Assembly (NCBI GenBank): GCA_964057225.1
Contig: OZ059897.1
Span: 12,028,001 to 12,092,000, forward strand
DNA length: 64,000 bases
DNA from: Auanema rhodensis
Taxonomy: Eukaryota > Animalia > Nematoda
Direction: 5' to 3'
Below the pieces are notes generated by a model. That model ran no database searches. It worked only from the letters and a program-made list of their open reading frames with translations, and was not told where the DNA came from. The position numbers and the translations under genes are program-made. Below, piece by piece: positions 4,997 through 60,499 of this stretch; position 1 is the first letter of the stretch, and every line of letters begins with the position of its first letter.

Positions 4997-6954
4997 CTAT
5001 TTTCCCATTGGTGGATCAGGTATAGCATCAACTGAAGCTTGTGGAGGTAATACAAATCCAGGAGGAAAGATTGTTCTCGTTTTTTCCACAGTAATTGTCT
5101 CAACTGGCATGCCTGGCAGGCCGTGAGGAGAACCAGCATGTGAAGGAATCTGAAATTGTTTTTATTTTTCTATGAAATATTGAAGGAAGACTAACCTCTT
5201 CGTAATGATCGCTCTGAGGGGGACCTATAGGCTGGTTGTTTGGTTGATTATTGAAAGGTGGATTCATTGGGGCAGGAACATCAGATGGTTTCATGGATTT
5301 TTGAGCGTCATAATCAGTTACATGAATTAATGGAACATTAATTATTTTAGGGCCATTATAATTTGAATTGGAATCTGGAGCTGATCCATAGCTTGAAGGA
5401 GCTACTGGTGCTCCATAATCAGATTTCGGATGACCATAGTCAGATACAGGCTCAGGAGGATGTGGAGGTTCCATTGGTGGTGGTGAATAGTCAGATTTTG
5501 GATGATCATAGTCAGATACAGGCTCAGATGGATGTGGAGGTTCCATTGGTGGAGGTGAATAGTCAGATTTTGGTGGACCGTAATTTGAGATTGGAGCAGG
5601 CATGCGTGAACTAACTATGGTAGTATCGTAATCCGAAATGGACCCTGGAGCGCCAGAATGAGCTTCTGATGCTCCATAATCAGATTTCGGATGACCATAG
5701 TCAGATACAGGCTCAGGTGGATGGGGAGGTTCCATTGGTGGTGGTGAATAGTCAGATTGGGGAGGACCGTAATTTGAGGTTGGACCTGAAGCATCTGGTT
5801 GCATCCTTGGTGCCCCATAGTCAGATTTTGGATGATCATAGTCAGATACAGGCTCAGATGGATGTGGAGGTTCCATTGGTGGTGGTGAATAGTCAGATTT
5901 TGGTGGACCATAATCTGAGATTGGAGCAGGCATGCGTGAACTAACTATGGTAGAATCGTAATCCGAAATCGATCCTGGGGCGCCAGAATGAGCAACTGGT
6001 GCTCCATAGTCGGATTTTGGATGACCATAGTCAGATACAGGCTCAGGTGGATGTGGAGGTTCCATTGGTGGAGGTGAATAGTCAGATTTTGGTGGACCAT
6101 AATCTGAGATTGGAGCAGGCATGCGTGAACTAACTATGGTAGATTCGTAATCCGAAATCGATCCTGGGGCGCCAGAATGAGCTACTGGTGCTCCATAGTC
6201 GGATTTTGGATGACCATAGTCAGATACAGGCTCAGGTGGATGTGGAGGTTCCATTGGTGGTGGTGAATAGTCAGATTGTGGAGGACCGTAATTTGAGATT
6301 GGAGCAGGCATGCGTGAACTAACTATGGTAGAATCGTAATCCGAAATGGACCCTGGTGCGCCAGAATGAGCTACTGGTGCTCCATAGTCGGATTTTGGAT
6401 GACCATAGCCGGATTCAGATTGAGGCTGCATAGGAGGTGAATAGTCAGACTGAGTAGGACCGTAGTGTGAGATTTGACTAGAAGAAACTGAAGACATGAC
6501 TGGAGCACCATAGCTAGATTGATGTGGCGAATAATTAGAGATAGAACCTGAGAAAGATCCGTAGTTAGAGAAGCCAGGTGAAAATTGACTTATTTTTTCG
6601 ATTGTTATAGTTCTTTGTTGATTTTTATATGAATTTTGATATCCGCTATTTATATCGGAGTTCATAGAATTTCGATAATCGTCTCTGTTATCATCATTGA
6701 AACTATTCCAATGATTTCGCCATAATCTGTGATTCCATCTAGGTGATATTGGACGATTAAGATACGAATTTTCTTGTTGAATATACGATTGCCCATCTAA
6801 ATTTGAATCGAAATTATTAAAGTTAGGTCGTCCATATCCGCCTCGTTTAACTCTAAATAAATAATAAATCAACAATCATCAAATATTAAATTTACCTTAA
6901 TGCTGTACACAAACTGCATAAAATTAGGAATAGGTATGAATATTGTAAGCGCAT
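4997..6954 (-). CDS. Secreted Pro/Ser/Tyr-rich tandem-repeat protein (probable cuticle or eggshell structural protein)
   Basis: Exon 1 MRLQYSYLFLILCSLCTAL is a signal peptide, followed by an RVKR furin site. The large exon (ORF 5100-6875) carries repeated SDYGAP/SDYSPPP/SDYGHP units. After a short intron the last exon ends ...PDPPMGK* (TAG 4997-4999). Confidence 0.8.
5395..6430. repeat. Coding tandem repeat, ~180 bp (60 aa) unit with internal sub-repeats, about 5-6 copies
   Basis: Blocks such as 'gaccatagtcagatacaggctcag' and 'gagcaggcatgcgtgaactaactatggtag' recur at 180 bp spacing (e.g. ~5925, 6105, 6285). Confidence 0.92.
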
Positions 6955-36398: not shown

Positions 36399-39311
36399 AT
36401 GGATTCAGAAGGGGGTGGTTCTCAAGATGGTATCGAAGTTACGAAAGCCATTGAATCTATGAAAGATGTCACAATAGATACGGCCTCAGTATGATCAAGT
36501 CTATCGCAACTTTTTATTATCACTATTTCAGGACATCGTTCGCACGTCACCTAACTCGTCAACATCTTCAGCTACTCACACTAGTACTCCAACTAAACTT
36601 CCTTTATCGCCACCGCCGAAAACATTTGATAAGTCACCTTTATCTCCTGCTCCCATTCCACCAGCTCGTTCTAAGAAGCGTGTCGTAAGTTTCCTGTTAT
36701 GTCATAATATTTCATCTTTCAATTTGAGGTTGCTGAATTAAAATGTCGTGAAATAAGATGGTTTTATAGACGAAGTGAAGCAGAGAAGTGGCTTTATTTC
36801 AATGGTGAGTTTTTAAATATATTTCTTTCTTATACAAAAGTTTAGGCCGCGACTCAATTATGTTGGAAATGAAGTATAGGTTAACTCATAATATTCAATT
36901 GGATGATCAAGCAGAAGAATTATGTGAAGAAATAGAGCTTAGAAAACGGCAAATGGTTGTTGTTTTAGAAGGTTTATACAGGTAAGCTAATGATAATAAA
37001 AATACGATTTATCGTTGTAACAATATAGATTGACCGAAGATGAGCGAACAATTGAAGCAATTTATTGGAAGGATGACTCTTGTGAAGTTCGACGTGGTAC
37101 TTGGTTTACTTCTGTATGTTTCATTCTCTTTTTTTCATAAATCATATCTATTTTAGGATTGGCAACCCATGGACTCTTCCTTAGCAGACTCTATTGATAG
37201 ACACCATTTGCAGTATTTTAGAGGGCAAGCTATTCCAGAAGGTCTGACAGTGTTCTCTTCAAAAGAAGCCAGCAACAAGCCTCGTATGTATAATGACAAT
37301 TAGTAAAGTAAAATACTTATTACCAGAATTAACTGAGCTACACTTGGAATCTATGGAGATTAAGTGGAGTTCGGTTATTGATATTTATCTTACTGCTAAG
37401 CGAGGGGCGTTTATGAGGTTTCCAAACTTTTCATAAATTTCAGTACTTTTTGACTATTTAGATATCTGTCTTGGGGAAAAAGCCAAGCTTTGCGTAGAGG
37501 TTTTGAAAAGGAAGCTGAATGGAACGATTCACCTGCAGAAATTACTCACCTAGTATTGGTAGTCCATGGAATTGGTCAAAAAGGATATGAAAATTTAATT
37601 GCTCAAAATGCTCAACAGTTCGTATTTTTTTATCATTCTGTTATTTTGTACTTGCACTTTAGAGTCCGTGATGGGGTACTTAATGCTTTGGATAAATGCT
37701 TTAATGATGTAATGACAAGACCCATGTTCTTACCAGTGGAATGGCGGTCTGGGCTTGTCTTAGGTATAATATTCTGTTTATTTTTGCATTGTTCCTTATT
37801 CCAGATGATGGCATAACTGATCAAATTACACTTCCTAAGATGAGCAGTATGCGTAATGCTTTAAACAGCACTGCAATGGATATAATGTATTATCAAAGTC
37901 CTTTATATAGACAAGAGGTTTCATTTTAGTTGTCTGATGTTTCTATATACGAATATTCTTTAGATTATTGCTGGTGTTACACGGCAAATGAATAAAGTTT
38001 ATACTCTGTTCAAAGAGAATAATCCAACTTTTAATGGCCCTGTTTCTATATTTGCACATTCTCTTGGATCGGTTATTTCGTATGATATATTGATACATTG
38101 GTCACCTTTACTACTCTATGACAAATATGTTACTGAAGCTATTGTGAGTTCTACCAAAAATGATGATTAGCTTATTCTTCTCTCAGAATTCCCATATTTC
38201 CAAATGTGAAGATGAAAAGAGTGCTTCATCTATGAAAGCTTTCCAAACTGCTCGACACGAATTACACGAGAAACTTGATGGAGGAATGAAAGAAATCTTG
38301 CTGAACAGCGAAGAACAACTTCAATTCAAAGTTAAATATCTCTTTGCTGTCGGAAGTCCTCTTGGAGTTTTCTTAGTGATGAGAGGAGCAACTTCTGCTG
38401 ACCTACACTCCAGCCGTCTTAACGTTTGTTTTATTTTTATAACACAATTTACAATGCACTATTTTAGGTTGAAAGAGTTTTCAATATTTTCCATCCTTAT
38501 GATCCGGTAGCTTACCGCTTAGAGCCTATGTTTGCATCTGAATGGAAAAACATTCGCCCTATTAAACTTTTTGCGTCCAATGATCTGAGAGGTTAGCTAT
38601 ATAGGTTGAATTCTTAATGTATTTAACCTTTAGGGCGTAACTCGTACGATGATCTACAATTGGAAGTTTATAAAAACTATTTGAAAAAAATGAAAAATAT
38701 GAAAAATAAGAAGAATACTCCTGGCGATAGACTGAGTGGAGTGAGAAGTGGGGATGATGATTTTGATGAAGAAGATGAATGTGATTCTGACGAAGGTGGA
38801 GCTCGTAGTGGATGTGAGTTCTTATATTTTGTATAAATATTTACTTGATTTTTCACAGGCTCATCTCCACGTTCTATTACACCTCCTCCAGGAGATTCTG
38901 AAAAGCCTGCTAAAAAAGGCTGGTTCTCTTTCAGCAAGAAATCTACTGCGGCACCTCCAGAGCCTCCAGTAGAGCATGCTAAAGAAGCAGAGGTAAACCA
39001 AACTTAAATTATTCAGTTGAATGAATCTAAAATTGTAGTCGGAGTTACCAATTGCCGATCGTATTCTTGGTGCTGCTAATCGACCACCTCACAGAATCGA
39101 TTTCCAGCTTCAAGTTAGTTCTGTTTAAAATTCTGTTTTTCAAGCTTAGTTTCAGCCCGCGATTACTGACAAATCCTATTGGTCTGTCCTTAAGAGTCAC
39201 TTCAGTTATTGGACTAACAATGACTTAGCTCTTTTCATTGCAAATGTTTTATACGTTAAACCTCCTGAAACACCCCAAGAAGGCGTCCAAGAAGCGAACT
39301 TGGGAAGATAA
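36399..39311 (+). CDS. ipla-1: DDHD-domain intracellular phospholipase A1
   Basis: EVRRGTWF, THLVLVVHGIGQ, FLPVEWR, lipase motif AHSLG, FAVGSPLGVF, FNIFHPYDPVAYRLEP and SHFSYW. Confidence 0.93.
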
Positions 39312-43736: not shown

Positions 43737-44157
43737 ATGTTTAACATTTTCTGAATTTTGTTTAAATATTCTTTTATAAATAAAGCTACTTTTTCACATT
43801 TCCGTTTCAATATAGATGTTCTCATATATTAGATAGCAATTCGGTTCCTGTAGTATTAGTTAAACATTTTAATTGTATTTCTTATTTGGTTCGTGGGAAA
43901 CAATCTTCAATTGATCCAACAGATTAAAAATTATTTTTTTCATTTCATAGCAGAAATTCACGTGAACCACGTGGAATGATTATAATTTATTTTGATGTCA
44001 AATTTAAAATGAACGGTGGGTCGCAATGTGAATGAAAAAAAAATATTTTTAAGTCTGATAATGGTTGAAATAAGGTTTATTAGTTTTTGATAAAACAGTT
44101 TTAATAATAAAAAAATAATAAATAATTGGAATTCTTAAATATAAAAACTAGAAAAAA

Positions 44158-46117
44158 TTAATTCTTCTCGTAATACTTGTTATAGTATTTGTGAATAATT
44201 TCGATCAAAACTAGAACTTTGTTCTTAATTAACTTCTTTGCCTGAAAACAGAAAATATCAAACAGTTCTCAAACAACATGATATACCAATTCAGGATCTT
44301 TTCTTTTTCCTAAAAGTAATATATAGAGCATTGAATTGCAGCCTAACATAATATGAGCACTTATAGGCAATAACTTGTAAATTGCTTCAGAAATCTACAA
44401 GAAAAAATAAATTTTGAACTCAAAAATAATCTAAAAGTTACCTGTTCGAATGTTCCAGGCATAGTCTCAGGACTACAATATTCAACTAAATAAGTATAAT
44501 ACTCTTTGACATATTTTTCGAACAGTTCTTCAAAATTTTCCGCTGGCAAAACGGAGCACAACAGTCTTGCTACATCGTGACCAAGATTACCCACATGTGA
44601 AGCCTTAAATTTATTCTTTTATATTCACTGGAAAAAAACTGATAACAGCTTTCTACTATTAATGGGAATACTATTGGAGCGCATTTAGTTTTTGAGCACT
44701 GTGTAAGAATACTTAACATCAAGAGAAATGCACCTTTTAGAATCATAAGTTTAGTTTCTTAATCACCCCAGACGGTTCATTTGAACAAAATCAAAAATTT
44801 TAATTTATTTGTTTACCTCGAAGATATTTCAATATACTCTTACTTTATATTTACAATGATTTGCTAAACGCGCTCCAAACATAATCAATTAAGAGATTAA
44901 GTCAACGGTGATAGCCGTGGTTGGATTCGAAATAATTACCTGGAAATCAATAAGAGCTCTTAAGTTTAACTGATTCTTCTCATTTTTAAGGAGTATAATA
45001 TTATTTGTCCATAGATCACCATGTAAAAACACAGGTTTCATTCCTGTCATCATAATCATAAAAAAATTTTCATAAAATTTGCTAAACCTAAAGATTCCGT
45101 TGTCTTATCCAGCATTATCAGATGCTCTTCTTCCGTAATATCAAAAAGAATTTGCTCAATGTCTGCCAGTTTCTGAAGGTGTTCCTCTCCAATCAACAAC
45201 CTGCATGAATCGTAAAAAGATCGTACGAACTGAAAATGTTCAAATGTTTATTGAAATGAAAATATACTGCATACCTTCTTCTCTAAAAGTGGACGGAAGC
45301 AATCAGAGAAAGTATTCATTTTGCACTTTTCAATTTCTTCTTCATTCATATATTTTATGGAAGCGTTAACCTTTGCAGTCGCTCTTAACACCTCAGACAT
45401 CAGACGCTCGTCAAAGAAGACATCAAGATGAATTGGCTCGACATTCTCAACATATTCCATGATTAAGAATCCTTTATTATAGTTCTCAGGTGGTGTTATT
45501 GCTTGTGAAGCATACACCTACAAATTGAAAATTAAATCATTCAAGGGTATCCAGAAATTACTTTAACTATCGGGTAGATTTCATCTTTGATTGTATTGAA
45601 ACGATTATAAGCATCTACTTCTAAGTTATGATACTGAAATGAATTAACCAAGTTTGAAAGTTTTGAATTTTGAATTTTACCCGACAAATTGGATTGACTT
45701 CAATTTCTGATTCCACCTTATCCTCAGACACGGAGAAGAAGTTTCCCTTCTCTGGGTCAATTTTTTTGGCATTCTCGTTTGCATTAGTAAGTGAGAGAAT
45801 CTAAACAGAATAATAGTCAAAAAACTCTGCTAATTATCAAATATACTTTAACAATAATCTTTTTGGGCAAGGTTTCATCAGCAAAATCTGTATGAACCAG
45901 CGTCATCTTAGAAGTAAATCCCTGTAAAAAATTGTTTTTTAATTATATTTTAAAGAAAATATAATAATAATAATACATTTATATCGGTTATATCATGAGC
46001 AATTGCATCATTTCCTAATTTAGCATTTGAACCTAATGATTTGTAAAGATGTTTTTGAATGTCTTCCCAATGTACATGAGTTTTCAAAATACCAGTTCCT
46101 TCCTCATTTAATGACAT
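44158..46117 (-). CDS. CHK kinase-like / EcKL (DUF1679) small-molecule kinase, copy 1
   Basis: MSLNEEGTGILKTHVHWEDIQ, GFTSKM, LPKKIIVKI, HNLEVDAY, NYNKGFLIMEY, FLHGDLWTNN, ALIDFQ, GNLGHDVARLL; all introns GT-AG and in frame. Confidence 0.9.
44674..44878. mobile_element. Degenerate MITE-like element in the kinase intron (copy 1)
   Basis: 15 bp terminal inverted repeats ttggagcgcatttag / ctaaacgcgctccaa (14/15 match), inside the only long intron of the gene. Confidence 0.45.
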
Positions 46118-46128
46118 CTATAAATATT

Positions 46129-46199
<71 letters not shown>

Positions 46200-47128
46200 C
46201 AAAAAGAAAAAAGAAATTATATTTAAATTTATTAAAGAAAATTCACAAAAAAGTAATCAGAATTAATATACCAGCGGTTTAAATGGACGAAAAATTGTTG
46301 GACAACATTGCACAACAGTGCGACATCAAAGATTATCGACGAGGAGGGTTCATTAAGGTCTATTTACAAGTTTGATGAATTAATTGAAATAAAGTTATGA
46401 AGAAATCAAAATGAATAAAAGCAATTTTTGATGTTTTGCTTTATTATTATTTTTATTTTAGTTTATTAACAAATTTATATGATTGAGTTACATATAATTA
46501 AATGATATTTTATGTATTTTCTTCCTTAAATACTAAATATGAAGTAATGTTTTAAATTTTTTAAAAATGAAATTTAAGAATTAATTCTAAAACCAATGTT
46601 CTTTCTCAGTGTATACGAAGGTATCAAATCTTTGAATCAATATAGTTATGCACGTTATCAGGTCACAATATACATGTGTTTGCATATTCAAGTCTTAAAT
46701 CAATAGTTCAAAACTTGAAAAAAAAAGTTTTGAAATATTATATATTTTAAAAATAAAATATATATATATATATATATTTATTTAAAACTTTTTCTTTATA
46801 GAAATATAAATGTTTTCTATTTTTCCTTATATTATTTTAATAAAATAGATCTTTTTGAGATTAAAAGGATAAAAAATGGGTTCTAAGATAAGCCTATGTA
46901 TATTGAAATTGCCCGAAGAAAAAGTGCTGAAGAAAAAGTTGAAAGAGCTGTTATGATCAAATGAGTTGGTGTTTGTGCTCTGAAATTCGCACGTCACAGA
47001 GTCGTTTAACGAAAGAAGAAACAGCTAAACGGTCAGTTTTGGCAAACCAAATACAAGATATGTCAATTAAATCCGGTTGATACCTGAACGGAAACAAGCC
47101 GTCTGACAGACGGACCAGGAGATCCGGG

Positions 47129-47137
47129 CTATATAAG
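47129..47137 (+). promoter_or_regulatory. TATA box of the Cys-rich peptide gene (mirror at ~51455-51463)
   Basis: ctatataag about 60 bp upstream of the ATG at 47191. Confidence 0.55.
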
Positions 47138-47190
47138 CTGCTGAGGATAGCTAAGAATATCGCAGTTTCAATCTAGCTAATCAACTCAAT

Positions 47191-47856
47191 ATGATTCGTT
47201 CATCAACACTCTTCTGGACTTTCAGCTCCCTCGTTGTTTTGGCTTTAGTCCAAGCTTCACCTTTACCTGTATCTCAAGATATTCCTACTGCTATAGACAC
47301 TCTTGGTGAAACTAGGTAAAAAACTATAACAGTTTCAAAAACAATTTTAAATCCAGAGTCAAAAGACAAGGTGGAGGTGGATGCGGTTGTGGGTGCGGAT
47401 GCGGCTGCTGCGGATGTGGAGGAGGAGGAGGAGGAGGATGTGGATGCTGCTGCTGTCGTCCTCGGTATTTCTTACAGTGTTTAAAAATGGTTCTTATTGT
47501 ATTTTCTTCAGATGCTGCTGTCGTCAATGCTGTACTTGCTGCACCACCCGCTGTTGTACCTGCTGCCGTACATGCTGTAGACCATGCTGCGGATGTGGTT
47601 GGTTTCGAATATCAATGGCTAGTTTTAACTTTTTCTCTGAATAGGTTGTGGATGCGGATGTGGCTGTGGAGGAGGTGGACGCAAGAGAAGATCTCTCCAG
47701 AACCTTAAAATTCAACTAGCTGATAAGGTAGAAAAGGAGATGAACGACCTTCTCCAAATCGCTGCCTCTGACGCTGTCAACCAATCCGCTGTCAATGAAG
47801 AATCTACCGCTCCCGATAGTGTATCTGCTATGAAAGAAACTGACAGCTTTCAGTAG
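47191..47856 (+). CDS. Secreted Cys/Gly-rich prepropeptide, copy 1
   Basis: 4 exons: signal peptide, RVKR, a 73 aa core QGGGGCGCGC...CCTCCRTCCRPCC...CGGGG, RKRR, and an acidic tail. Confidence 0.88.
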
Positions 47857-48818
47857 AATTTTAAATTTTAAATTTTAATAATAAGTATTTTATGTAAAAT
47901 AATTAATATAGAATCGATAAATATTTCTTATAAAGTACTTTTCTTCAATATTTTTTAAGCAACTAGACCTCAACTTTTATGGTTTTCTTCTAATTGTTCT
48001 GATGTAATTTTAGTACTACTTCTAATTTATAACATTATATAATTAATACTTAAATGAATCAATGGTATATATACTCAAGAAGCCAGATGTGTTTTCGGTC
48101 TGCTTCACAAGTGTTATTTTTGCCTAAGCTCCATAAGTAGAAACTGAAAATATTTCAAGAAATTCTTTCTATAATTCTCATTTTTCCAAATATTGTAACT
48201 TAATTTTATTAATAAAAGTAATTTTAAGTAATTTTCTTAATTAAATAAACCCAGTTATTTTTGTATTAATAGACAGTGAAATTCAAATTTGAAAATAAAC
48301 TTAAATTGACTTTGAATGGAAATTGGATTGTTAACAATAATTTGTATATTTAAGGAAGGTACAAATAAATAATAATATTTTGAAGCAGTGAACTACTAAG
48401 AATATTGTGATATATTGAAAAATAATTTCTAAGAAAAAACCTGCACATTTTTTTGTCGGTTCGACATTGATTTCGTTAATCAAGCTTCAATCAAAACATT
48501 TTTCATGCTATGCAATATTATAATACGAACGACATTATGTTATATTTGCATTTTAAACTTTTAGAAGAGAGAAAGAGAAATAATATTTTGAATTCAAAAT
48601 TTCAATCAAATTTTAAAAATATGAATTCAGAAGTTTATAGTCCAAAACTTAGCAGTTACCCTGTAGATGTTTGCACTGGAATTTGAAAATATCTCATGCT
48701 TGCAAAAAACTCTATCCGATGAATACGTCGTGATTTTCTTTGTAGAAACTTTATTAATTCATGTTTGAGTATTGTGATTAAAAAAAGATGTTTATAGTTA
48801 TAATATTTAATAATTCAA

Positions 48819-49955
48819 TTATATAAAGTATAAGTAACGTTTAATTGAACAATAATTTATAATTGCTTTTCTATATAATGGCACAGAATATACCGTTAGC
48901 AATGGTCCACACATCAGTACAACCGCCAACATTAATACAAGAAGCTCTTGAAGTTCTAAAAAAAGAAAATTCTTTTTATTTTATGATTATTTCCTAACCT
49001 GTAATATTAAACTCTATGTATGGAAGAAAAACAAAAATGAATGCTATAATAGCTGTTAGAAATAAAACAATGGCCTTAATGGTATATTTAATAAATTAAG
49101 TTCAACATCATTATTACCTGGATGAAATTAATTTTCATAAATAGTTTGTGAGAATTAATAGTTTGTTGTGACATACTTGATTTCAACTTTTTAAATTTCA
49201 GTATAATGAGTATTACTAATAAAACAATTTGCAAAGAAAACAAAAATGCAACAACCAAATTGGATATAAAAAAAATTATTATAATTGTACCAGATTTAGT
49301 ATATGATACTACTATGCTATTTTCTGATATGACATCATTGGGATCACCCAAATAAATCTAAAAACAGATTATATTGAAGTATAAGACATGAAAAACCTTT
49401 AAACAGTCATTGTTAACTTCTTCGACATTTTCTAATTTTGTTATAATAAAAAATACCATAGGAATCACAAAATATAACAAACATAATACAGAATATACCA
49501 TATAGTTAAGTTGTCGTCGTGATCGTAATTGTAAAGCTTTATATCGATGATAGAGCATCAAGATGGTTATTCCAGCATAAACTTGAAAGTTTTGAGAATA
49601 TATTCGTCAGTCGTTTTGTTACTTACAGTATACCAAAGAAATTAAGACTAATGTTACATTTGTGGGCGATACATGAAAATACATTATAAAGCCTGTATAT
49701 GAACCTCCAAAGCATGGTGCTAACAATATCGGTTTGACGCCGAGAGACAGAAAAAAAGCAAAAAATAATCCTCTTAACAAAGAAATTAATGAAATAGTTT
49801 AAGAATAAAACTTACATAATGCATTGTGAACACAGCAAAAATTTCAAGTCGTTCTCCATGTTTATAGGTGAATGATACAGAATACAAAAACAAATTAGGA
49901 ACATACAAATCAGGGATATCGTGCCACAAATATTCATACAGATCATATAAAACAT
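48819..49955 (-). CDS. 7TM chemoreceptor, srh/sri (Str superfamily)-like; single copy in the palindrome spacer
   Basis: ILYHSPINM, KPILLAPCFGGSYTG, LMLYHRYKAL, MSQQTINSHKLFMK and VPLYRKAI; the frame is preserved across 5 short introns. Confidence 0.78.
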
Positions 49956-50735
49956 ATACTTAAAATAAGATTAAAAGTGTTATTTAGTAGTAGTAAATAA
50001 TAATATTTTTGAAAATTTGTGAAGAGAAGAAGAAAATTTTTCAATAGTTGCCGTATGCTCTTCAAATTATTTCATATAACATAGCATGAAAAATGTTTTG
50101 ATTGAAGCTTGATTAACGAAATCAATGTCGAACCGACAAAAAAATGTGCAGGTTTTTTCTTAGAAATTATTTTTCAATATATCACAATATTCTTAGTAGT
50201 TCACTGCTTCAAAATATTATTATTTATTTGTACCTTCCTTAAATATACAAATTATTGTTAACAATCCAATTTCCATTCAAAGTCAATTTAAGTTTATTTT
50301 CAAATTTGAATTTCACTGTCTATTAATACAAAAATAACTGGGTTTATTTAATTAAGAAAATTACTTAAAATTACTTTTATTAATAAAATTAAGTTACAAT
50401 ATTTGGAAAAATGAGAATTATAGAAAGAATTTCTTGAAATATTTTCAGTTTCTACTTATGGAGCTTAGGCAAAAATAACACTTGTGAAGCAGACCGAAAA
50501 CACATCTGGCTTCTTGAGTATATATACCATTGATTCATTTAAGTATTAATTATATAATGTTATAAATTAGAAGTAGTACTAAAATTACATCAGAACAATT
50601 AGAAGAAAACCATAAAAGTTGAGGTCTAGTTGCTTAAAAAATATTGAAGAAAAGTACTTTATAAGAAATATTTATCGATTCTATATTAATTATTTTACAT
50701 AAAATACTTATTATTAAAATTTAAAATTTAAAATT

Positions 50736-51401
50736 CTACTGAAAGCTGTCAGTTTCTTTCATAGCAGATACACTATCGGGAGCGGTAGATTCTTCATTGA
50801 CAGCGGATTGGTTGACAGCGTCAGAGGCAGCGATTTGGAGAAGGTCGTTCATCTCCTTTTCTACCTTATCAGCTAGTTGAATTTTAAGGTTCTGGAGAGA
50901 TCTTCTCTTGCGTCCACCTCCTCCACAGCCACATCCGCATCCACAACCTATTCAGAGAAAAAGTTAAAACTAGCCATTGATATTCGAAACCAACCACATC
51001 CGCAGCATGGTCTACAGCATGTACGGCAGCAGGTACAACAGCGGGTGGTGCAGCAAGTACAGCATTGACGACAGCAGCATCTGAAGAAAATACAATAAGA
51101 ACCATTTTTAAACACTGTAAGAAATACCGAGGACGACAGCAGCAGCATCCACATCCTCCTCCTCCTCCTCCTCCACATCCGCAGCAGCCGCATCCGCACC
51201 CACAACCGCATCCACCTCCACCTTGTCTTTTGACTCTGGATTTAAAATTGTTTTTGAAACTGTTATAGTTTTTTACCTAGTTTCACCAAGAGTGTCTATA
51301 GCAGTAGGAATATCTTGAGATACAGGTAAAGGTGAAGCTTGGACTAAAGCCAAAACAACGAGGGAGCTGAAAGTCCAGAAGAGTGTTGATGAACGAATCA
51401 T
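50736..51401 (-). CDS. Secreted Cys/Gly-rich prepropeptide, copy 2
   Basis: Mirror of 47191-47856; the ORF-track translations are identical. Confidence 0.88.
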
Positions 51402-52392
51402 ATTGAGTTGATTAGCTAGATTGAAACTGCGATATTCTTAGCTATCCTCAGCAGCTTATATAGCCCGGATCTCCTGGTCCGTCTGTCAGACGGCTTGTTT
51501 CCGTTCAGGTATCAACCGGATTTAATTGACATATCTTGTATTTGGTTTGCCAAAACTGACCGTTTAGCTGTTTCTTCTTTCGTTAAACGACTCTGTGACG
51601 TGCGAATTTCAGAGCACAAACACCAACTCATTTGATCATAACAGCTCTTTCAACTTTTTCTTCAGCACTTTTTCTTCGGGCAATTTCAATATACATAGGC
51701 TTATCTTAGAACCCATTTTTTATCCTTTTAATCTCAAAAAGATCTATTTTATTAAAATAATATAAGGAAAAATAGAAAACATTTATATTTCTATAAAGAA
51801 AAAGTTTTAAATAAATATATATATATATATATATTTTATTTTTAAAATATATAATATTTCAAAACTTTTTTTTTCAAGTTTTGAACTATTGATTTAAGAC
51901 TTGAATATGCAAACACATGTATATTGTGACCTGATAACGTGCATAACTATATTGATTCAAAGATTTGATACCTTCGTATACACTGAGAAAGAACATTGGT
52001 TTTAGAATTAATTCTTAAATTTCATTTTTAAAAAATTTAAAACATTACTTCATATTTAGTATTTAAGGAAGAAAATACATAAAATATCATTTAATTATAT
52101 GTAACTCAATCATATAAATTTGTTAATAAACTAAAATAAAAATAATAATAAAGCAAAACATCAAAAATTGCTTTTATTCATTTTGATTTCTTCATAACTT
52201 TATTTCAATTAATTCATCAAACTTGTAAATAGACCTTAATGAACCCTCCTCGTCGATAATCTTTGATGTCGCACTGTTGTGCAATGTTGTCCAACAATTT
52301 TTCGTCCATTTAAACCGCTGGTATATTAATTCTGATTACTTTTTTGTGAATTTTCTTTAATAAATTTAAATATAATTTCTTTTTTCTTTTTG

Positions 52393-52463
<71 letters not shown>

Positions 52464-52474
52464 AATATTTATAG

Positions 52475-54434
52475 ATGTCATTAAATGAGGAAGGAACTGG
52501 TATTTTGAAAACTCATGTACATTGGGAAGACATTCAAAAACATCTTTACAAATCATTAGGTTCAAATGCTAAATTAGGAAATGATGCAATTGCTCATGAT
52601 ATAACCGATATAAATGTATTATTATTATTATATTTTCTTTAAAATATAATTAAAAAACAATTTTTTACAGGGATTTACTTCTAAGATGACGCTGGTTCAT
52701 ACAGATTTTGCTGATGAAACCTTGCCCAAAAAGATTATTGTTAAAGTATATTTGATAATTAGCAGAGTTTTTTGACTATTATTCTGTTTAGATTCTCTCA
52801 CTTACTAATGCAAACGAGAATGCCAAAAAAATTGACCCAGAGAAGGGAAACTTCTTCTCCGTGTCTGAGGATAAGGTGGAATCAGAAATTGAAGTCAATC
52901 CAATTTGTCGGGTAAAATTCAAAATTCAAAACTTTCAAACTTGGTTAATTCATTTCAGTATCATAACTTAGAAGTAGATGCTTATAATCGTTTCAATACA
53001 ATCAAAGATGAAATCTACCCGATAGTTAAAGTAATTTCTGGATACCCTTGAATGATTTAATTTTCAATTTGTAGGTGTATGCTTCACAAGCAATAACACC
53101 ACCTGAGAACTATAATAAAGGATTCTTAATCATGGAATATGTTGAGAATGTCGAGCCAATTCATCTTGATGTCTTCTTTGACGAGCGTCTGATGTCTGAG
53201 GTGTTAAGAGCGACTGCAAAGGTTAACGCTTCCATAAAATATATGAATGAAGAAGAAATTGAAAAGTGCAAAATGAATACTTTCTCTGATTGCTTCCGTC
53301 CACTTTTAGAGAAGAAGGTATGCAGTATATTTTCATTTCAATAAACATTTGAACATTTTCAGTTCGTACGATCTTTTTACGATTCATGCAGGTTGTTGAT
53401 TGGAGAGGAACACCTTCAGAAACTGGCAGACATTGAGCAAATTCTTTTTGATATTACGGAAGAAGAGCATCTGATAATGCTGGATAAGACAACGGAATCT
53501 TTAGGTTTAGCAAATTTTATGAAAATTTTTTTATGATTATGATGACAGGAATGAAACCTGTGTTTTTACATGGTGATCTATGGACAAATAATATTATACT
53601 CCTTAAAAATGAGAAGAATCAGTTAAACTTAAGAGCTCTTATTGATTTCCAGGTAATTATTTCGAATCCAACCACGGCTATCACCGTTGACTTAATCTCT
53701 TAATTGATTATGTTTGGAGCGCGTTTAGCAAATCATTGTAAATATAAAGTAAGAGTATATTGAAATATCTTCGAGGTAAACAAATAAATTAAAATTTTTG
53801 ATTTTGTTCAAATGAACCGTCTGGGGTGATTAAGAAACTAAACTTATGATTCTAAAAGGTGCATTTCTCTTGATGTTAAGTATTCTTACACAGTGCTCAA
53901 AAACTAAATGCGCTCCAATAGTATTCCCATTAATAGTAGAAAGCTGTTATCAGTTTTTTTCCAGTGAATATAAAAGAATAAATTTAAGGCTTCACATGTG
54001 GGTAATCTTGGTCACGATGTAGCAAGACTGTTGTGCTCCGTTTTGCCAGCGGAAAATTTTGAAGAACTGTTCGAAAAATATGTCAAAGAGTATTATACTT
54101 ATTTAGTTGAATATTGTAGTCCTGAGACTATGCCTGGAACATTCGAACAGGTAACTTTTAGATTATTTTTGAGTTCAAAATTTATTTTTTCTTGTAGATT
54201 TCTGAAGCAATTTACAAGTTATTGCCTATAAGTGCTCATATTATGTTAGGCTGCAATTCAATGCTCTATATATTACTTTTAGGAAAAAGAAAAGATCCTG
54301 AATTGGTATATCATGTTGTTTGAGAACTGTTTGATATTTTCTGTTTTCAGGCAAAGAAGTTAATTAAGAACAAAGTTCTAGTTTTGATCGAAATTATTCA
54401 CAAATACTATAACAAGTATTACGAGAAGAATTAA
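52475..54434 (+). CDS. CHK kinase-like / EcKL (DUF1679) kinase, copy 2
   Basis: Mirror of 44158-46117; HGDLWTNN and IDFQ motifs are intact. Confidence 0.9.
53714..53918. mobile_element. Degenerate MITE-like element in the kinase intron (copy 2)
   Basis: TIRs ttggagcgcgtttag ... ctaaatgcgctccaa. Confidence 0.45.
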
Positions 54435-55794
54435 TTTTTTCTAGTTTTTATATTTAAGAATTCCAATTATTTATTATTTTTTTATTATTAAAACTGTTTT
54501 ATCAAAAACTAATAAACCTTATTTCAACCATTATCAGACTTAAAAATATTTTTTTTTCATTCACATTGCGACCCACCGTTCATTTTAAATTTGACATCAA
54601 AATAAATTATAATCATTCCACGTGGTTCACGTGAATTTCTGCTGTCGTTCAGATATGCATGTCACGTTTTTTTTCATTACTGAGAAGATACATTAGGAAC
54701 TAGAGATCAAAAGTTTTTAGTGAAAATAAAAAAAAATTGATCGTAGATGAACAATTTCATTCGATCAACACTGTTTATTTTTTAGCTCAATTACTTTCCT
54801 GTTCCAGATGTTAATCATTTCTGTGTTACGCAGTTGAATTTTCGTCCGATTTTCTAGAAATGGATTAGAAACTCCCTCTCATGTGTTTTAAAATTTTTTT
54901 CGCTGAACTTAACCCTTGTATTGGAACAATTTCCTTGTTCTTTAGAGTGTATTTCTTCCTTTGTCTTGTCGTTTGTCTTTCTTGCTAATGGCGTGATATG
55001 GGAAAGTAGTGTATACGGAAGACATAAGTATAACATGAATTCAGAAGATAATCTAAAGATTGATTCAGATTTACGAGAAGTTTGTTGCACAGATTCTATT
55101 GAATAGCACGTAGACACAAGACGATGCTATTATTAAATACTGATTTGTGTCTGATCAAAATGACAAAACGGTTATGGGGTTTTCTTGTAATTTTCTTTGT
55201 TGAGTTTGTCCTTGATTTCACTCTGAATGTAAAATATTTCACAGTTTAAGTCGAACATTTGCTCTCTTTGATTTACTATGATGATAAGCTTTTCCCCTTT
55301 GTGAATTCTTGATCACGTGGAAGATGATACAAAAAAAAGCTCATTACCGGATGTTTCCTATTAAATTTTAATTTCTTACCCATCTCAAATTTCAGATTTT
55401 TTATTAGTCAATATTTGAACCATTCGGCCATAAACTTTGTGTTTTCCCAAAAAGTTGCAAAGAGCTATTAGTTCGTTAGACGATCACAATTCAATGATTT
55501 ATCAAACCATACTTCTTAATTACAATAGTGGAATCAAAGAAGAAACACACACACATATCGTAGAAATAAAATGAATCGCAGAATCAGTTTTTTTTTATTT
55601 TTAGAAAAATTCATTTGCGAATACATTTTCTTTCAATACATTTAGCAACATGCACTTAAAAAAAGACAGTTATTTTAAAATTTAATTGATAAGATAATTA
55701 GGTAAAGACGACACTTAATTTCAGTAAATTAGCAAATGATCATATTTTAAATGACAAAAAAAAAGAAAAGATTTCTAAGTGATTATATTCTCTA

Positions 55795-58393: not shown

Positions 58394-60499
58394 ATGGCCT
58401 CTTGCAATTCACGCAACGTTTATGCTGATACACAAATTAAAATCAACGACTCTCTGATGATGAATTCGAGCTCGGAATATCAAATGCCCTTCCCAGCTTT
58501 AGCCCAGTTTTCTGTTGTAACGCTATGGGTTGCATATGTAAGTTTATACTTCTTCTTCTCTTCAAGCCAAGTAGTTTGATTTTTAATTCAATGTTGAATT
58601 TTGATCAAAAGTTGTAAAATATTGCACTTAAAACTTTATCACTTAACAATAACATAAGAACAAAGTCTAGTGAGTATGATTAGGATGAAAATGATTTTAT
58701 CTTGCTCTGAACGATCTTTTTCAATCTGATTGGTTTCTGACTATTCAAACATGACCATGTGTACCGTAATCTCAAAAAATGTTACGGCATGGATTACTGT
58801 AGTTTTATGATCGTTCCATGAGAGGCGCAGAAAAACTAAAATTCATTGAATTCCAATGAAGAAAAAATAAAAATCTTAATTATTTTTTTTATAAAATATA
58901 ATAATATTTGATTGTTTAGTGTATTGGATGCTCAATTTATCCTCGTTTGGGCCCTGTACAACTTCAAAAATCGATTCGACAACTTTTCCACTGTCGCCCA
59001 TCTGATATGGCTTTTTTCGACAAATACCGTGTTTTTGCTATTGTATGGGTATTAATGAACCATTTGGGAAGTGAGGGTCGAATTGATATTTTACTTCGTT
59101 TGCCATCTGGAGAGGATTTCAAAGTAATTTTGATACGCTTTTTTCAATTTTTCATGATTGTTATTTTTAGAAAAATGTACATGATCATATCATTTTTGGT
59201 CCTTTCTTAGGAAATTCCGCACTTGGTGTAGAAATCTTCTTAGTTCTTTCTGGAGTTTTGTCGGCTGTGTCATGGTTCTCCAAAGAACGTGAACCATTCT
59301 GGACCCATTACTGGTCTTTCGAGAAGAAACGCTATTTAAGATTAGCACCTAGTGTTGTCGTATTTCTATTATTAGCTGGTGGTCCACTTATGAATTATAT
59401 GTTACCAAGGTATATATATAGATTAATCTATATGACTTATAATATTCTATAATTTAGATTTAATGATTCAATGACATCTCAATGTGGCAATATTGGCTAT
59501 ATGAGTCATGTGTTCTTCTTTGCCAATGTACGTGAAGCTCCAGTATGCTTAGGATACCTTTGGTACTTGGGATTAGACTTCCAATTGTACCTGATCATTC
59601 CCATTCTCTATACCTTGATCTTCAAATCAAGAAAATTGTTCTATGGTGTCATAGCGTCAACTGTCATTCTTTCAATGATTGCTAGAGCTATTCATTGTTC
59701 ATACTATGGGGTCTGTAACAATAGTGGTGTTGATATACCTGTAAGTTTATAATATTCTATAAACAAAAACACTCATTTGTCTTTTTTTCAGTTCATATCG
59801 TTCCCAAATCAGACAGATGCTGATTTAGAAGCTATTTACGGTGGAATATATCAATTGTATGGACGTCCACATACTAAATGCGGACCTTTCCTTATTGCTG
59901 CTGCTATTGGCGTCTTCCTTGTCTTCTACAAAAAGAGCCGACAATCAAACTCGTCTACTCCAGAAATCAAATTGTCTGAAAGAGCCAGCCAGATTCTCTT
60001 TTATTCATCTTTGATGCTTGCAATTGTTACTGTCTATGCTATTCTACCAGAGTATTGGGATGTAAATGCAGGAACAAATCTATACAACGTCACATACACA
60101 GCCACATTCCGCACAGTATTTGCTATTGCATTACTCGGAATGATCTTATCAAGACTTTTGGGACCTAATAAGTAATATCTTTATAATTCTTTATCGTATC
60201 TTCTAACTTTTTGCATTTTCAGTGGACCTGTCAGTATTTGGTGGACCGTACTTGGAAAATTGAGTTTCAACGTGTATTTACTTCATATGCCAATTGTGTT
60301 TGTTTTCAACAATTTAAATTATCTTCAAGAAGCTGACGGAGCATTAGAACTACTGGTTGTATTACCATTATTAGTGATTATTAGCTTCACAGCTGCTTTT
60401 ATTTATCATATTTTCGTTGAATCACCTATAGCTGATATTATTAGATATACCCAATCTCACTTATTTGAACCAACAAAAGAACATTTGAAAATGCATTAA
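58394..60499 (+). CDS. rhy-1: Acyltransferase-3 family multipass protein RHY-1
   Basis: NHLGSEGRIDIL, GNSALGVEIFLVLSG, CLGYLWYLGLDFQLY, GVCNNSGVDIPFISFP, RPHTKCGPFL, AILPEYW...LYNVTYTATFR, YLLHMP and FVESPI. These match remembered RHY-1 motifs; there is no NRF domain. Confidence 0.87.

Follow-up and report, generated by a model that had tools for sequence, protein, structure and literature searches.

A gene-bearing palindrome with identical 4.56-kb arms in a rhabditid nematode chromosome, probably a very young inverted segmental duplication

Introduction

Newborn gene duplicates of Caenorhabditis elegans are often adjacent and inverted (PMC2728529), and among the closest C. elegans duplicates with a synonymous divergence (dS) below 0.03 more than 80% are in inverted orientation (PMC3194840). 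The duplicon pairs of 1-4 kb in this worm are mostly inverted; above 4 kb, 2 of 8 are (PMC2728738). Here we describe a gene-bearing palindrome from a rhabditid nematode chromosome, found in a 64-kb window (the whole stretch of DNA that was analysed, contig C5:12028001-12092000, within a 181-Mb assembly of 112 contigs), and we argue, with a probability that we put at about 0.65, that it is a real and very young inverted segmental duplication made in one step. A block of 4.56 kb, consisting of a kinase gene, a gene for a secreted peptide and the divergent promoter between them, would have been copied once, in inverted orientation, 1567 bp away, and a chemoreceptor gene of the srh class beside the block would have become the spacer.

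The closest single precedent is the hsp16-1/hsp16-48 locus of C. elegans (Russnak and Candido 1985), as far as it is described in PMC3966223. According to that description, two divergent genes and their promoter are present as inverted copies, 100% identical, on either side of a short unique spacer and between unrelated flanks, the arrangement seen here. The two loci differ in scale and in content: our arms measure 4.56 kb against 1.9 kb, our spacer is 1567 bp long and holds a whole gene whereas that of hsp-16 is 416 bp long, the genes encode an EcKL kinase and a secreted Cys/Gly peptide instead of heat-shock proteins, and the species is another one. The locus also resembles the general class of newborn inverted duplicates of C. 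elegans (Katju and Lynch 2003), in being adjacent, inverted, essentially undiverged, a few kb apart and without a link to transposons. Several features of the class are present, namely two inverted copies on one chromosome, separated by a few kb, with near-zero divergence that includes the non-coding DNA. Our pair nevertheless stands at the large end of this class, in which most inverted pairs are below 4 kb (PMC2728738), and it comprises two complete genes where partial or chimeric copies are common.

Two other systems are instructive. Sequenced human fold-back inverted duplications (Hermetz et al. 2014, PMC3907307) contain a single-copy spacer that represents the loop of the fold-back and measures 766-70,466 bp, with a median of 3.4 kb. 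Our structure shares their architecture, in which single-copy DNA separates a copy from its inverted counterpart, and its 1.6-kb spacer falls within the range of 0.8-70 kb. The human duplications are, however, megabase-scale, lie beside terminal deletions and arise via dicentric chromosomes, whereas the one described here is 4.6 kb long, interstitial and rejoined to the original flank, and its fold-back is one that we infer. The palindromes of mammalian sex chromosomes (Rozen et al. 2003, as cited in PMC3194840 and PMC3966223) likewise have gene-bearing arms that are identical or nearly so, around a unique spacer. In the terms in which these two papers cite them, their arms range from 10 kb to megabases, different species share them, and the chromosomes that carry them do not recombine; our palindrome sits in the middle of a chromosome-scale contig.

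Results

Geometry of the inverted repeat

The left arm (window positions 43949-48512) and the right arm (50080-54643) are 4564 nt long each and 100% complementary, and they enclose a unique, non-palindromic spacer of 1567 nt (48513-50079), none of the three having a strand; the whole structure corresponds to C5:12,071,949-12,082,643, or about 10.7 kb. A repeat search followed by a direct base-by-base comparison gave 0 mismatches and 0 indels between the arms, with the coordinate sum constant at 98592 across them. The arm limits, the spacer length and this sum had been put forward in an earlier note on the same DNA and are exact, and the self-alignment suggested there as a check on identity returned 0 differences over the 4564 nt. 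The same note had claimed that net indels were absent even across the microsatellite, and this is indeed so: the compound (TAAA)n(TA)n tract at 46119-46198 (~76-80 nt) is perfectly mirrored at 52394-52473. The identity of the arms extends over their non-coding DNA as well as over this microsatellite.

All four edges are sharp, complementarity being at the random level from the first base outside each of them. Sensitive blastn detected no residual similarity between 10 kb of the left flank and 9.4 kb of the reversed right flank and, together with base comparison, no self-complementarity of the spacer past short AT-rich stretches. At the outer junction, microhomology is 0 bp under either polarity. 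The window is free of N, and no other inverted repeat of at least 150 nt occurs in it.

Copy number and genomic setting

A genome-wide search found the arm exactly twice in the 181-Mb assembly, both times at this locus. The only further similarity to the arm in the genome is a 720-bp paralogue of the peptide gene, 69% identical, at C5:5460045-5460764. No kinase or srh neighbour lies beside this paralogous locus at C5:5.46 Mb, which therefore does not indicate an ancestral arm. The spacer is single-copy in the genome apart from paralogues of its srh gene, the left flank is unique, and the right flank is unique save for a short dispersed repeat of the (CT)n type. No alternative haplotig carrying the arm, the spacer or the flanks was found in the assembly, and the locus lies mid-contig, at 12.07 Mb of the 23.1-Mb contig C5.

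We also surveyed 200 kb of C5 (11.60-11.80 Mb) for further inverted pairs, and this sample contained two more with kb-scale spacers. The first (C5:11,600,560-11,606,398), some 470 kb from the palindrome, has arms of ~1689 nt that differ by 1 mismatch, sharp edges and a spacer of ~2.46 kb. The second (C5:11,739,102-11,744,974) has arms of ~950 nt that differ by 17 substitutions and 3 indels, around a spacer of ~3.95 kb, and is an older inverted duplicate. One near-perfect and one diverged pair within 200 kb imply that inverted pairs arise often in this region and decay, and the diverged pair shows that neither the assembler nor homogenisation makes all pairs perfect. The surveyed interval also holds a tandem array (C5:11,610,678-11,612,011) with a period of ~135 bp and copies that are 94-97% alike.

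Genes of the arms and of the spacer

Gene models were examined exon by exon, and the exons were not joined into spliced proteins. The outer gene of each arm encodes a small-molecule kinase of the DUF1679/EcKL (CHK-like) type, identified by Pfam and tblastn at 44170-46117 on the minus strand in the left arm and by tblastn at 52475-54422 on the plus strand in the right arm. The exon pieces of the left copy match DUF1679 (PF07914) over profile positions 2-356, and the EcKL match (PF02958) falls at the kinase catalytic loop; the pieces score 38.6-43.1 bits against a Pfam gathering cut-off of 24, and the exon piece 44892-45104 includes the catalytic-loop motif HGDLW..N. In a search of representative proteins, the closest to the kinase exon was protein P0001 (412 aa) of Auanema sp. 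JU1783, with 58% identity over the exon. In tblastn, residues 1-411 of this protein align at 46117-44170 and, mirrored, at 52475-54422; the kinase gene is therefore complete in each arm, where ~220 bp of 3' flank accompany it.

The inner gene of each arm has four exons with GT..AG introns, as read from the sequence, and lies at 47191-47856 on the plus strand, its mirror image being at 50736-51401 on the minus strand. The predicted product is a Cys/Gly-rich secreted peptide precursor in which a signal peptide leads into a propeptide with KR at its end; the Cys/Gly-rich core comes next and is separated by an RKRR site from an acidic tail. The precursor matches no Pfam family. The start codons of the kinase and peptide genes are 1073 bp apart within the arm, so that the divergent promoter that they share has been duplicated too (46118-47190 on the left and 51402-52474 on the right, without strand, each between the two start codons and each including its copy of the microsatellite). 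This divergent intergenic region contains no GATA, HSE, MRE, SKN-1 or DAF-16 motifs above background. A motif scan also recorded a paired E-box, two CACGTG 3 nt apart, at 43959-43973, mirrored at 54619-54633 (no strand), that is, 10 nt inside each outer edge; these are the only 2 matches in the 64 kb, where none is expected by chance.

The spacer contains a serpentine chemoreceptor gene of the srh class (48822-49970, minus strand), recognised through PF10318 matches on three unjoined exon pieces. The matches follow each other in the correct order (profile positions 5-44, 50-97 and 168-246); the piece at 49091-49357 reaches 27.8 bits, above the gathering cut-off of 26.3, and the matches of two further exons are weak. 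The gene lies entirely within the spacer and is apparently whole; ~110 bp separate it from the right arm and ~310 bp from the left. Two paralogues, 82% identical to it and 5 kb apart (C5:11962601-11963375 and C5:11967648-11968382), are found ~110 kb upstream, and the spacer gene thus appears to be a member of a local, recently expanding cluster. A word search with one srh exon, restricted to a length window that does not admit full-length proteins, gave no match.

The layout that the earlier note had drawn, with kinase and peptide genes pointing away from each other in each arm around a central G protein-coupled receptor (GPCR), is therefore confirmed, the receptor being the srh gene. Its claim that both genes were duplicated whole with their shared promoter also stands, each arm being complete for all three, and so does its report that target-site duplication and transposase are lacking. 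Comparison of the sequence beyond the two outer edges revealed no target-site duplication, Pfam returned no transposase, integrase or reverse transcriptase domain in the open pieces of the arms and spacer, and no Rfam family was matched at the locus.

The palindrome is set in a gene-poor, AT-rich interval, bounded by a DDHD-domain gene that ends near 39300 and an acyltransferase-3 gene that starts near 58900. The gene families of the locus (srh and DUF1679) and its best database relative, the Auanema sp. JU1783 protein, assign the genome to the rhabditid nematodes. Elsewhere in the window, at 5100-6875 on the minus strand, is its only long open reading frame (ORF), of 591 aa, which overlaps a 189-bp tandem repeat family (5467-6474) and probably encodes a repetitive protein.

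Discussion

Origin of the palindrome

Three readings had been left side by side at the outset: a recent duplication, an older palindrome homogenised by conversion, and an artefact. Our data favour the first, on the strength of the sharp edges, of arms longer than any conversion tract reported for Caenorhabditis and of nearby pairs that do diverge. A copy, a single-copy spacer and an inverted copy, with blunt and unrelated flanks, are the expected product of fold-back priming or of a double template switch, and the route was probably repair of this kind. A break or a stalled fork would have occurred at one edge of the present spacer; the 3' end would then have folded back, or switched template, with the spacer as the loop, and some 4.6 kb would have been synthesised along the complementary strand before a blunt junction was made between the new end and the far side of the break.

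The absence of differences over 4564 nt gives a 95% upper bound on divergence of ~6.6e-4. Mutation in C. elegans proceeds at 2-3e-9 per site per generation, and at a rate like this one fewer than roughly 1-2e5 generations would separate us from the duplication or from the last homogenisation. The unchanged microsatellite suggests an interval shorter than this bound of 1-2e5 generations.

Several points weigh against a recent one-step duplication, or at least against the confidence with which it can be argued. Zero differences fit "just duplicated" and "just homogenised" equally well, and conversion was the explanation that Russnak and Candido, as cited in PMC3966223, preferred for the hsp-16 repeat, which is analogous. 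Reads that map to both arms could, during polishing, have led to the loss of a few genuine arm differences, and the number of copies that the animal carries is, like the age, an estimate drawn from the sequence of one assembly. As to mechanism, the 0 bp of microhomology at the outer junction fits end joining and proves no mechanism, while any microhomology at the inner junction would have been absorbed into the arms, where it is unreadable in the derived sequence.

Gene conversion between the arms of an older palindrome, repeated often enough to keep them identical, is the alternative that survives best, although we consider it unlikely. The arms are 100% identical although their flanks are unrelated, which is the argument that Russnak and Candido used for hsp-16 in the account given by PMC3966223; at this level they are within the 99.9% or more identity around a unique spacer that is expected of conversion-maintained palindromes. 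Moreover, preferential homogenisation of close inverted duplicates has been proposed by Ezawa et al. for the excess of young pairs in C. elegans (PMC3194840). Conversion tracts in Caenorhabditis, however, are ~100 bp long on average and 2958 bp at most (PMC3966223), against an arm of 4564 nt. Perfection to the last base at four edges, microsatellite included, would require many overlapping tracts that reached each edge, and the nearby inverted pairs with similar spacers carry substitutions and indels, so that homogenisation is not general here. As perfect identity spans all 4564 nt up to every edge and the tracts reported for Caenorhabditis are shorter, one recent event is simpler than many overlapping conversions. 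It is more doubtful still that the locus is an autosomal gene-bearing palindrome actively kept identical by arm-to-arm conversion, a worm counterpart of the Y-chromosome palindromes. If it were, the idea of Ezawa et al. that the excess of "young" inverted pairs in rhabditids is partly an illusion produced by homogenisation would gain support.

An assembly artefact, in which the second arm would be absent from the animal or slightly different arms would have been made identical by consensus polishing, seems to us improbable. A copied consensus would be expected to show just such perfect identity through homopolymer runs and microsatellites. The form of the structure is nevertheless unlike that of a fold-back chimera: its spacer is 1567 nt of unique, gene-bearing sequence, it lies mid-contig without N gaps, and beyond the right arm comes new unique DNA instead of the reverse complement of the left flank. 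The lack of an alternative haplotig for arm, spacer or flanks and the real differences retained by similar pairs nearby argue in the same direction. Finally, a mobile origin, with the arms as long terminal inverted repeats of an element or foldback-type transposon that captured genes, has the inverted-repeat geometry as its only support and is effectively refuted by the lack of target-site duplication and transposase, by the absence of any third arm copy in 181 Mb and by contents that are ordinary host genes.

Consequences for the organism

Read as a recent inverted duplication, the palindrome would supply both genes twice, intact and under identical regulatory DNA, and the dosage of both is therefore potentially doubled. 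A change in dosage of a detoxification-type kinase and of a secreted cysteine-rich peptide is plausible. The ERI-6/7 small interfering RNA (siRNA) pathway targets recently duplicated genes in C. elegans (PMC3213143), however, and a doubled dose is thus not guaranteed. The geometry itself may have effects: recombination between the arms is predicted to flip the spacer, and a transcript that runs on from either peptide gene into the facing arm is predicted to form hairpin RNA.

Young inverted duplications are already well known in worms, and the locus is a rather large and tidy case of this known class. It would be a clean, large example of the process that dominates newborn gene duplicates in rhabditid nematodes. 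Its value is that of a test locus for the choice, posed in C. elegans ever since the hsp-16 locus, between recent birth and homogenisation of perfect inverted pairs.

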